Shown: positions 18,734 to 21,893, counted from the whole stretch's first letter. The stretch: DNA of 63,530 bases, filler included, from Reticulomyxa filosa (GCA_000512085.1; 26 parts of 26 records of this genome joined end to end with filler, not necessarily neighbours in it), one strand, 5' to 3'. Program-made: numbers and translations. The notes: generated by a model not told the origin, from the sequence alone.

Positions 18734-19707
18734 TATTTGATGATTGTCAATTATTTGTTCTGGATCAGATGATCAAACAGTTCGTGTATGGAATGTTGAT
18801 AACAACAAACAAATTCAATCATTCAATAGACATTCGTATTGTGTGAAATTTTCATCATATCATTATCATAATCATGGCCAATATGTGATTTGTTCTTCAT
18901 CAAGTGACAGAACCATTCTTTTTTGGGATTTCAAACATAATCAACAGTTACAAATATTCAATGAACACACACTAACTGTTTATGGTATTGAATTTTCATC
19001 ATTTAATGGTGGTAGATATTTGTGTTCTGGATCTAGTGACAAAACAATTCGTTTATGGTACGTCGAAACATCAAAATTATTACATATTTTCAATGGACAT
19101 AAAGATGGTGTTTGGTGTATTGATATTTCAACATTACAAAGCAATAATAATAGTGATAATAATAATAATGAAATGAATAATATTGGTGTGATTGGTGGAA
19201 ATGGATATACAATTTGTTCTGGGTCACGGGATAAAACCGTTCGAATATGGGATATTGAAACAACCAAACAATTCAATATATTCAATGGACATGACAGTTA
19301 TGTGAATAGAGTGAAATATGGATCAAATGAGCTAGTGAATACAATATTATCTGGATGTGCAGATAAAAGTGTTCGTTTATGAGATATTCGATCTGGTCAA
19401 CAAATTCAAGTATTCAATGGACATACAAGTTGGGTGTATGCTGTTGAATATTCACCATTTGTAACAAATAATAGTATTAATAATTCAAATGTGATATGTT
19501 CTGGATCAACTGATAATGCAATTCGTTTTTGGGATATTCGATAAAATAAGAATGAATTGTATATCATCAAAGGAAATGAGAAAGAAGATTTTGGAATATT
19601 GTGTTTTAAATTGTTGTATTGAAAAAGAAAGATAAAACAAAGAATGTTACATATGATTTGAATTTGTGTTATGGTTCACGCAAAGGTCCTTTCGTATTTG
19701 GGGATAA
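18734..19707 (+). pseudogene. WD40-repeat protein (about 6 repeats visible) with a premature stop and frameshifts
   Basis: Repeated ICSGSxDxTxRxWD and FNGH motifs. TGG has become TGA at about 19380 (VRL*DIR), and frameshifts occur in the last blade before IWG*. Confidence 0.9.
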
Positions 19708-20259
19708 TTTACTTTTTTGTTGAAGTGTTTTTTCTTTGAAAAATTTGATTAAAAGAAAAGTTAGGTATTAAACTTGTTTGATTTGATTGAACGCAAACAT
19801 TGAAAGATGTATTTTATCTGACTTTGTTGTTTAAAAAAATTAAAACCTGCGTTCAATGTTGTTTAAAGAATTGAAAAGCATAATAAATAAAAATTTTATC
19901 TAAATATCAAAATAAGTTTCAAAGATTTTAAGTATTGTGTTTTTTGTATAGCATCAAACACAATTTTTTGTCGTAATTTTTTCTTTTTACATAAACACAA
20001 ATCATGAACCTAGCTTTGTTGTGATGGCATTTAATGCGGAAATAGAAAATTATTTTGTGAGTACAAAGCTAATATTATTTAAATTTATGAAAAAGATAAT
20101 GTAGCAAAATGGAATGAAATGCATTTTTTCAATAAGTGAAAATTACATTATCTGCAATGGAAAGATGATGAAATTTTGGGCTTGATTCATATGCGTACCT
20201 TTTGGGACCAATAGTAATGGTAGAAGACTAGAAGAAAGTACAACTAGAAGAAAAAGGTT

Positions 20260-21590
20260 ACAGCGTACGGATTTCCACCGACAGATACATTTTGTTTATA
20301 ATATTCATATAACACCACATGAATAGTTTGCTCTTTCTCTTTCACTTTTTCTTTCTCCATTGTTGTCATTTCTTTATCTTTATCTTTGGCGTATCCAGGA
20401 GTAAAGCTGTTCAAATACAAAGTTTGCTATTTTCAATAATGCGTTGCTGTCGATTTCTGCATTGCCTTTTTTGAACAATTGTGGTGGCCTTAAAATCCCA
20501 ATAGACAAATGAAGTTTATGACTTTTACTATTTTTGCTATTTCTTTATTGTCATTCCATTCACAGATATATTATGATTTTTGTTAGCGTAATATCGCTTT
20601 CTTGTTTAATATCTTCCTCTTCTGTATTATTTGGCTTCCATGACCTGATGTGTTCATGACTTAATTTTGGATAGATAAATCCAGTATATTTTTCCAATGT
20701 GGCAAATTGTTTCAATGTTGCTTGCATCTCCACATATACATCATGCTTTGGTACATATAATTTAATATTATGAAAACGATGATGTATTTTTGATTGTTTT
20801 TCGAAAAAGTCTTTATCTTCTGAAACAGCCAAATTAAATTGTCTGCTGTACGCAATTTGGTATCATTATCACATAAAATAGTAAATCTCTCAACATCAAA
20901 TACTCGATTAAATTTACCATTGTAGTCAGTTTGAATTTTTTCAGATAATCGTTTCATATCTTTGACTTCCTGCGGTTTTGCTACTGTAATCGAACATTGT
21001 TAAATCTCTTGACTTTCCATTGCCTTTTTACTTGAGCAATTAAATCTTCTAAACTTTTTGCAAGTTGAACAATTTTGTTAGCTTTTAATTTATAAGATAA
21101 TCCTGATTCGAGTGGATGAGTATATTTATATTTATTATCAATCTCATGCAAAGGACCATAACTTGAGTCAATTGAATATTCAGAGTTGAAAAATTTTACA
21201 CGTATAACAGGCGCAACAGTCGATCTATCACAACTGGGACACATATAACATGTTTTAATTGAGTAATTGAAATATCTCCAAATTTTTGATTCACCCATAC
21301 TACACGATCACCTTTCGATGCAATGCATAGCTCTTTATTGTGCAATAGCCTTGCAAGTTTATTCCTGGTCCAAATCATTTGTTTTCGGCATTTTTCAATT
21401 TTCTTTCATTTTCTTTTCTATCTTCCTTTGCTTCAGTGTTATTATTCTTTATTATATATTTTTTTACGTTGCAAAAATTAAAAAATAAAATTTACAAACT
21501 TGGTCTTTTGTTGTATTTTCCAAAATCAATGTTGGGTTTCGGTTTGAATGTATTTTCGATTGGTTATTCAAGTTATCTTTGTCTTCAGAT
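20260..21590 (-). pseudogene. Cys-rich Zn-binding module fused to a RelA/SpoT-like nucleotidyltransferase domain, decayed
   Basis: Stitched frames read GPGINLQGYCT/NKELCIASKGDRVVWVNQKFGDI/KTCYMCPSC, then VKDMKRLSEKIQTDYNGKFNRVFDVERFTILCDN...SEDKDFFEKQSKIHHRFHNIKLYVPKHDVYVEMQATL...SHEHIRSW. This gives the K-x2-R-x2-EK, D-x2-R and ExQ pattern of the RelA_SpoT synthetase fold. One AT-rich GT-AG intron lies near 21450-21500. Confidence 0.72.
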
Positions 21591-21591
21591 A

Positions 21592-21737
21592 CAGTAGAAT
21601 GCAAAGTAAAGTTGACACCTAAAATGGAACCTTATAGAGATGATTGATTTTCTTCATGAAAAAACAACATTCGACCTAATTTTTTTTAAAAATTATCTAC
21701 AAATCGTGTAGTTTTTAAATATCTTTTTGGTTTTTTA
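21592..21737 (+). mobile_element. Tc1/mariner-type element end (TA|CAGTAGAATGCAAAGTAAAGTTGACAC...)
   Basis: About 145 bp closely similar to 25953-26100. It starts with CAGT directly after TA. A second end starts at 21756 (TA|CAGTAAGATAAAAAAGAAAGTTGACACCTAAAATG). Confidence 0.75.
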
Positions 21738-21893
21738 TTACATCTTTCCTAATTACAGTAAGATAAAAAAGAAAGTTGACACCTAAAATGCCANNNNNNN
21801 NNNNNNNNNNNNNNNNNNNNNNNNNNNNNNNNNNNNNTTAATTAATTAANNNNNNNNNNNNNNNNNNNNNNNNNNNNNNNNNNNNNNNNNNNN

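Follow-up and report, generated by a model that had tools for sequence, protein, structure and literature searches.

Organization of the locus

The window analyzed here is a 63,530-nucleotide (nt) stretch of Reticulomyxa filosa DNA (GCA_000512085.1), and the subject of this work is a minus-strand gene remnant at positions 21604-20247 in which a cysteine-rich module is followed by motifs of a RelA/SpoT homologue (RSH) synthetase. The remnant lies in a 3060-nt piece of the window (18734-21793, 28.8% GC) and converges on a plus-strand fragment encoding WD40 repeats. Translated segments of this piece match solely R. filosa proteins, with 52-75% identity. When translated pieces were compared separately with the R. 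filosa paralogues, E values of 2e-34 and 2e-29 were obtained, so that by sequence similarity the relationship is far beyond chance. At the DNA level the two nearest paralogous contigs, L007 and L008, are 85-86% identical to the window over ~500 nt, and contig L009 is 74% identical (L and P handles denote paralogous contigs and proteins, respectively).

A first-pass annotation of this DNA had described a gene in four broken frames. Six-frame translation placed every string that it quoted on the minus strand, and the description of the frames was accurate: there are five segments with four switches, and all three minus-strand frames are used. The features of the remnant are as follows.

21500-21604, minus strand, frame 0: 5' exon-like segment ...VSEDKDNLNNQSKIH...TKDQ, without an ATG at its head
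21447-21499, minus strand: candidate 53-nt GT-AG intron, from splice enumeration
21041-21446, minus strand: Lys/Glu-rich leader and N-terminal four-cysteine (Cys4) β-sandwich ('Zn') module, PGINLQGYC...C...W.N...CPSC
From 21374, minus strand, frame 2: PGINLQGYC
Minus strand, frame 1: CIASKGDRVVWVNQKFG
21307-20984, minus strand, frame 0: CYMCPSC to SLEDLI, with Cys codons at ~21241 and ~21232
20985-21040, minus strand: helical linker SLEDLI..SKKAM..
20563-20999, minus strand: RSH synthetase-like core, with the fold evidence coming from intact paralogues
20999 onward, minus strand, frame 2: VKDMKRLSEKIQTDY...VFDVERFTILCD, with an Asp codon at 20897-20895
20862-20563, minus strand, frame 1: HHRFHNIKLY...VEMQ...SH..IR, with HHRFHN at 20784-20767 and VEMQ at 20730-20722
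20247-20562, minus strand: remnant of the helical connector between the RSH core and the NACHT P-loop, with further 1-nt deletions and stops

The motifs that can be read in the RSH core of the window are a basic Syn1-like KPQEVKDMKRLSEKI, FDVERFTILC, HHRFHN, VEMQATL, and SH-EHIRSW.

Lesions in the window copy

Lesions were called by aligning the window DNA to contigs L007, L008, and L009. The four frame switches coincide with 1-nt deletions in the window after positions 21338, ~21260, 21034, and 20842, the first two lying in the Cys4 module and the third in the helical linker. Three more 1-nt deletions follow 20585, 20568, and 20524, giving seven overall. A TGA at 21377-21375 stands where the nearest paralogues have GGA (Gly), and a 21-nt deletion in the helical linker creates a TAA at its junction (21002-21000). 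A second 21-nt gap, corresponding to seven codons between KLRTA and QFNL, occurs beside the 1-nt deletion at ~20845-20842. Finally, a 9-nt deletion after 20658 removes L-F-Y of the conserved SHLFYE motif, including its nearly invariant Tyr. In five long paralogues the ~372 corresponding codons form one uninterrupted exon (tblastn 100%, a single high-scoring segment pair), and the frame breaks of the window are therefore lesions and not introns. Where the first-pass annotation had assumed an intact, intron-containing gene, the window thus carries a heavily damaged copy with more than four lesions.

The copy is also truncated at its 3' side. The last stretch with similarity to the family, 20330-20286, corresponds to paralogue residue ~405 and stops ~80 residues short of the P-loop, and the minus-strand open frame ends at 20247. 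No NACHT was found by tblastn in the remaining ~540 nt, in any frame, or elsewhere in the piece, in agreement with the earlier remark that none is visible at this locus. With no NACHT present, with family similarity lost beyond 20286, and with the WD40 repeats encoded on the other strand, the window copy is not linked to a STAND NTPase, and it cannot make an effector-NACHT-WD40 protein.

An unlikely alternative is that the locus is an intact, expressed, stand-alone gene for a Zn module and an RSH domain without NACHT, in which the breaks would be sequencing or assembly errors together with small introns. Every 1-nt lesion can be placed in a short homopolymer run, so that some of them may be such errors, many paralogues sit on contigs of 500-700 nt in this highly fragmented assembly, and one real-looking intron is present. 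However, a substitution accounts for the TGA at 21377 and a 21-nt deletion for the TAA at 21002, the 9-nt deletion takes away a nearly invariant Tyr, a further 21-nt gap is present, and there is no ATG at the head. The intact paralogues have no introns here, and the neighboring WD40 fragment is full of stops as well. A nonsense substitution, a stop made by deletion, multi-codon deletions, and a truncation are not the kind of change that homopolymer errors produce. We conclude that 21604-20247 on the minus strand is very probably a pseudogenized, 3'-truncated copy of an R. filosa multigene family.

Reading TGA as Trp under an alternative genetic code was rejected as an explanation of the stops, since these occur together with frameshifts and multi-codon deletions, and since the gene models and uninterrupted exons of paralogues need no stop reassignment.

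In a three-way comparison with L007 and L008 over 21353-21010, the changes unique to the window lineage were 17 nonsynonymous and 5 synonymous, a small sample that gives a ratio of nonsynonymous to synonymous changes per site (pN/pS) of 0.82. For the L007 and L008 lineages the values were 0.96 (12 nonsynonymous and 3 synonymous) and 0.24, respectively. The ratio found for the window is consistent with relaxed constraint, though the counts are small. Much of the closest subfamily of the window may be decaying, as pN/pS of L007 is ~1, with counts too small for a test.

Architecture of the intact paralogues

With a profile that covered only the C-terminal part of the RSH domain, HMMER detected 42 proteins (E ≤ 1e-3) in a set of 1.84 billion representatives. 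All 10 of the 42 that were looked up belong to R. filosa, as does every named match of a word search, and no relative outside Reticulomyxa occurred among the looked-up matches of this C-terminal-half search. A word search with the N-terminal module also returned R. filosa proteins only; it is limited by length and shared words and has little bearing on distant kin. Judged by these searches, the family has so far been found only in Reticulomyxa filosa.

In intact members, a short leader, the Cys4 β-sandwich, and the RSH-like domain are followed by a helical connector, a NACHT domain, in some cases pentapeptide repeats, and WD40 repeats. An example is ETO36350, a protein of 1734 amino acids. In long paralogues PG.N..G.C is found at residue ~36, HHRFHN at ~246, EMQ at ~264, and the Walker-A P-loop within NACHT at ~487. 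EMQ and the P-loop are ~220 amino acids apart in five long paralogues; two partial paralogues have spacings of 200 and 162. Pfam assigned NACHT to P0012 (E 5e-11), P0019 (E 2e-7), and P0017 (E 5e-7), and precomputed annotation gave NACHT for P0011. Pentapeptide repeats were found in P0017, and 9-14 WD40 repeats in P0011, P0015, and P0023. Thus, the statement in the first-pass annotation that similar Reticulomyxa sequences continue into NACHT, pentapeptide, and WD40 domains was borne out for the family. At the family level, the NACHT domain comes after the effector and C-terminal repeats are present in the same protein, as in STAND proteins.

Several members depart from this layout. The stretch that separates FD from KAEQ is missing from P0005, and positions 253-952 of L001 (ASPP01022995.1) likewise look damaged or rearranged. 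The P0004 model lacks ten residues that contain EMQ. P0021 (1017 amino acids, annotated as 'vcbs repeat-containing') has its RSH domain near the C-terminus (~714-974) and no NACHT. The damaged and rearranged members suggest rapid turnover and alternative architectures.

Fold of the RSH-like domain

The assignment of an RSH synthetase fold comes from the paralogues. Pfam searches with the separate window pieces gave no RSH match and returned chance-level matches only. With the paralogues P0004, P0010, P0012, and P0019, PF04607 (RelA_SpoT) matched the same region at 17.3-20.4 bits (E 6e-4 to 6e-3). A profile built on 13 paralogues (A5) was compared with all PDB sequences and gave one significant match, which was Tas1 (6OX6, E 1.9e-4). 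The alignment is collinear in two segments, the first with K-x-K...R...K-I..DY.GD / D-x-[GA]-R-x-T-I-[IL] and a later one with H-x-x-Y-E. Searching PDB with profile A4, which is without the N-terminal half of the domain, produced noise only (DrrA, E 0.3).

The AlphaFold2 model computed on A5 had a mean predicted local distance difference test score (pLDDT) of 83.9 and a predicted TM-score (pTM) of 0.74. When this model was compared with PDB structures using Foldseek, the first ~40 ranks were all RSH synthetases. Tas1 was at the top (E 7e-6), and SaEAS, SAS1, SAS2/RelP, Rel, and CapRel followed in that order. As a lead only, 11 of the 30 nearest named Atlas clusters in a feature-based look-up were phage or bacterial clusters bearing RelA_SpoT. 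On these profile and model comparisons the assignment of the RSH synthetase fold is sound, and the nearest solved relatives of the predicted domain are toxins of the Apk1/Tas1 type and not stringent-response enzymes. Of the earlier RelA/SpoT reading, therefore, the synthetase fold behind a cysteine-rich module stands, through the sub-threshold Pfam matches, the Tas1 profile match, and the Foldseek ranking, and the intact intron-containing gene does not.

Catalytic residues and selection

The 13 paralogues have an invariant Glu125 in EMQ, and conservation is at least 90% for both Asp62 of F-D-[IV]-G-R and Gln127. Ahead of the EMQ strand, T-H-[HYF]-R-F-H-N is invariant or nearly so in the same set, and the basic K-x-K...R...K helix of the donor site is retained. 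In the AlphaFold2 model the Asp is located just before strand RFTILC and the Glu within strand IYVEMQATL, the positions expected for RSH Syn2 and Syn4 if the model is correct. This mapping of catalytic roles was made by motif position and strand topology, not by residue-level superposition. With hhalign the FDVGR Asp was aligned on the Asp of FDVRAVR in E. coli RelA, in a weak match (E 0.18) that is informative for the position of the Asp only. In the window the codons for the catalytic Asp and for the Glu (20730-20728) both survive, in different frames and with lesions between them.

Pairwise ratios of nonsynonymous to synonymous substitution rates (dN/dS) between five intact paralogues were 0.04-0.24 for the RSH domain, 0.12-0.33 for the N-module, and 0.11-0.52 for the helical tail, which are rough values since dS is saturated (>1). 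By these estimates the RSH domain is under purifying selection, the strongest of the three N-terminal regions. Conservation of the acidic residues and dN/dS among paralogues had been proposed as a check, and both spoke for the domain.

The motif G-Y-x-S-x-H is the guanine-acceptor motif of (p)ppGpp synthetases. As had been noted earlier, this GY-type motif is replaced in the family, by the conserved T-H-[HYF]-R-F-H-N. Its loss from the sequences argues against a canonical (p)ppGpp synthetase, not against the RSH fold.

The same changes bear on the possibility that, throughout the family, the RSH-like domain has lost its pyrophosphokinase activity and serves as a nucleotide-binding or oligomerization adaptor that has kept the fold. 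We regard this as improbable, if a little less so than an intact gene at the locus. The sub-threshold Pfam scores, the replacement of GYxSxH by THHRFHN, the absent Arg of EIQIRT, and an identity of only 20% to the nearest solved enzyme would fit such an adaptor. It is difficult to reconcile with the nearly invariant metal-binding Asp and invariant Glu of the E-x-Q strand, with the basic donor-site helix that has been kept, and with purifying selection that is strongest in the RSH domain. Moreover, Tas1 and SaEAS, to which the domain is most closely related, are highly active as enzymes (PMC10083569, PMC12691689).

The Cys4 module

In the family alignment A6 the residues C17, C23, C52, C55, W33, and N35 are invariant. 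The AlphaFold2 model of the module is all-β, with a pLDDT of 86.5. The module matched no Pfam family and no PDB entry. Compared with eukaryotic clusters of the ESM Atlas, the module of P0015 (residues 28-140) gave TM-scores of 0.63-0.72 over more than 100 residues. The look-alikes include hypothetical proteins and fusions with arginine ADP-ribosyltransferase of Rotifera, a cluster of Ciliophora, and proteins of Porifera and Mucoromycota that are fused to ubiquitin and in some cases also have a RING domain. From the predicted structures, it looks like an unnamed domain that is widespread in eukaryotes and found in company with effector enzymes. Zinc binding would follow from its Cys pattern only.

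Relation to known systems

Tas1/Apk1 of Pseudomonas aeruginosa is a type VI secretion toxin with (p)ppApp synthetase activity, and SaEAS (8VX3) is a related exported synthetase. Tas1 makes pApp, ppApp, and pppApp and kills by depletion of ATP and ADP (PMC10083569). In contrast to both enzymes, the Reticulomyxa domain is eukaryotic and occurs inside a NACHT-WD40 protein, not behind PAAR, MuF, or a signal peptide, and no immunity protein is known for it. Acceptor specificity cannot be read from clade membership, because SaEAS is promiscuous whereas VpEAS makes pppGpp only (PMC12691689).

The small alarmone synthetases (SAS) SAS1/RelQ and SAS2/RelP (5DED, 6EWZ, 6FGK) are 13-18% identical to the Reticulomyxa domain. 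They use G-Y-x-S-x-H for guanine stacking, where the Reticulomyxa domain has T-H-[HYF]-R-F-H-N, and there is no evidence in the latter of the SAS homotetramer or of the allosteric pppGpp site. CapRel and the toxic SAS (toxSAS) enzymes FaRel2 and PhRel2 are RSH enzymes that pyrophosphorylate the CCA end of tRNA and belong to antiphage defence or toxin-antitoxin modules. Identity to this group (7ZTB) is 9%, and the putative sensor in Reticulomyxa is NACHT-WD40 and not a pseudo-zinc-finger antitoxin domain.

Compared with long RSH enzymes (RelA, SpoT, Rel, and plant RSH), the intact paralogues have no HD hydrolase, TGS, ZFD, or ACT domain and no ribosome-linked context; the absence of hydrolase and TGS had been correctly anticipated. 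An RSH fold would also be expected of a housekeeping or organellar RelA/SpoT homologue that serves (p)ppGpp metabolism, or of a bacterial contaminant. Both are extremely improbable given the missing hydrolase, TGS, and ACT regions, the eukaryote-like DNA (29% GC) with an intron and a WD40 neighbor, and the dozens of paralogues fused to NACHT-WD40. The C-terminal-half search likewise returned no match from outside Reticulomyxa among its looked-up proteins.

The closest likeness in architecture is found in fungi. The first-pass annotation had pointed to fungal nucleotide-binding oligomerization domain-like receptors (NLRs) with RelA_SpoT effectors, and this precedent is real: RELA_SPOT-NACHT-WD40 proteins have been described in fungi, for example in Gaeumannomyces graminis (Dyrka et al. 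2014, PMC4986451). Both families combine an RSH-type effector with NACHT and WD40, and both are multi-copy and variable. They differ in that the fungal RelA_SpoT domains reach the Pfam threshold whereas those of Reticulomyxa do not, and in that the Reticulomyxa proteins add the upstream Cys4 module and often pentapeptide repeats before WD40. The C-terminal-half profile retrieved no protein from fungi at E ≤ 1e-3.

In the literature searched, Reticulomyxa and NACHT never occurred together, and there was no description of NLR-like proteins in Reticulomyxa. A recent review on fungal cell death did not mention RelA_SpoT, alarmones, or ppGpp in a word search, and the literature searched reported no activity or product for the RelA_SpoT effectors of fungal NLRs, which have been listed since 2014. 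The effector-NACHT-WD40 layout with RelA_SpoT was previously reported only in fungi. What is new is the same fusion in a different supergroup, Rhizaria, with a divergent Tas1-like RSH domain and an extra Cys4 module.

Possible function of the family

Taken as a whole, the locus is probably best explained as a decayed copy of an NLR-like family with a Tas1-like RSH effector. Several observations weigh against this explanation. The Pfam gathering threshold of PF04607 (27 bits) was never reached by the family, and solved RSH structures match with modest TM-scores (0.40-0.59). The G-Y-x-S-x-H motif and the Arg of EIQIRT are not recognizable in the paralogues, so that activity may differ or be lost. 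To these are added the saturated dS behind the selection estimates, the homopolymer positions of the single-base lesions, and an immune role that is suggested by architecture only.

If intact members work in analogy with other NLR/STAND proteins, their WD40 repeats would sense a ligand, and this would drive oligomerization of NACHT. Oligomerization could then bring together or release the N-terminal RSH domains and so activate them. Once active, these domains would use ATP to pyrophosphorylate the 3'-OH of an acceptor. An adenine nucleotide would be the most likely acceptor, in which case (pp)pApp would be made and ATP depleted, as by Tas1; a guanine nucleotide and the tRNA CCA end are alternatives. 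The cell may then stop growing or die. Given the resemblance to Tas1/Apk1, synthesis of (pp)pApp with depletion of ATP is the most attractive output. Other products are conceivable, since relatives in the clade differ in their acceptor (PMC12691689) and tRNA-modifying toxSAS enzymes share the fold. Both the immune role and the enzymatic product are thus put forward by analogy.

In its most specific form, the proposal would be that intact members are the first eukaryotic Tas1-like (pp)pApp synthetases, that a foraminiferan NLR, when triggered, turns ATP into (pp)pApp and thereby arrests or kills the cell it belongs to, and that the Cys4 module has a regulatory or targeting role. We consider this tentative and more doubtful than not, although less unlikely than loss of pyrophosphokinase activity across the family. 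If true, it would be a nucleotide-depletion way of execution parallel to TIR NADases and PNP_UDP ATP nucleosidases. With (p)ppApp synthetase toxins that kill bacteria as the nearest solved relatives, the output hypothesis, ATP depletion or a toxic alarmone, is testable, and ETO36350 and ETO08206 are intact, cloneable candidates. The window copy itself, a decayed member, matters less than the intact family members. Together with the many fragmentary paralogues, it points to rapid birth-and-death turnover, which is typical of immune receptor families.

The 5' segment and candidate intron

A single small 5' intron (53 nt, GT-AG) is plausible at 21499-21447. This stretch is AT-rich, contains stops in all frames, and its removal joins ...TKDQ to NNNTEAKEDRK... 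in frame. It is indel-rich compared with L007, whose flanks are 86% identical, and the deposited models of the paralogues P0007 and P0008 skip it. In the splice enumeration no single intron reproduced the deposited P0007 gene model.

The 5' exon VSEDKDNLNNQSKIH (VSEDKD...QSKIH) duplicates a piece of the RSH core (VSEDKDFFxKQSKTH), and the same is seen at the N-terminus of P0007. On the minus strand, 46 nt at 21593-21548 are 84.8% identical to RSH-core DNA of the paralogue L006 (742-787). This copy suggests, from the sequence similarity, a partial duplication or recombination between members of the family.

Neighboring WD40 fragment and direct repeat

Two further features were found in the piece.

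18734-19700, plus strand: WD40-repeat gene fragment (PF00400, E 5e-29), truncated by the left edge of the piece
21590-21626 and 21754-21790: 37-nt direct repeat, 84% identical, with copies 164 nt apart on either side of the stretch that immediately precedes the remnant

The WD40 fragment consists of six repeat units of ~132-192 nt each. Its reading frame is interrupted at 19380 by a TGA that replaces the conserved Trp of L-W-D, and again at 19542 (TAA), 19620 (TGA), and 19659 (TGA), and its C-terminal tail had no counterpart in the three long paralogues checked. It belongs to another gene and not to the minus-strand gene, and is probably a second pseudogene. The 37-nt direct repeat (21590-21790) spans the 5' edge of the minus-strand remnant.

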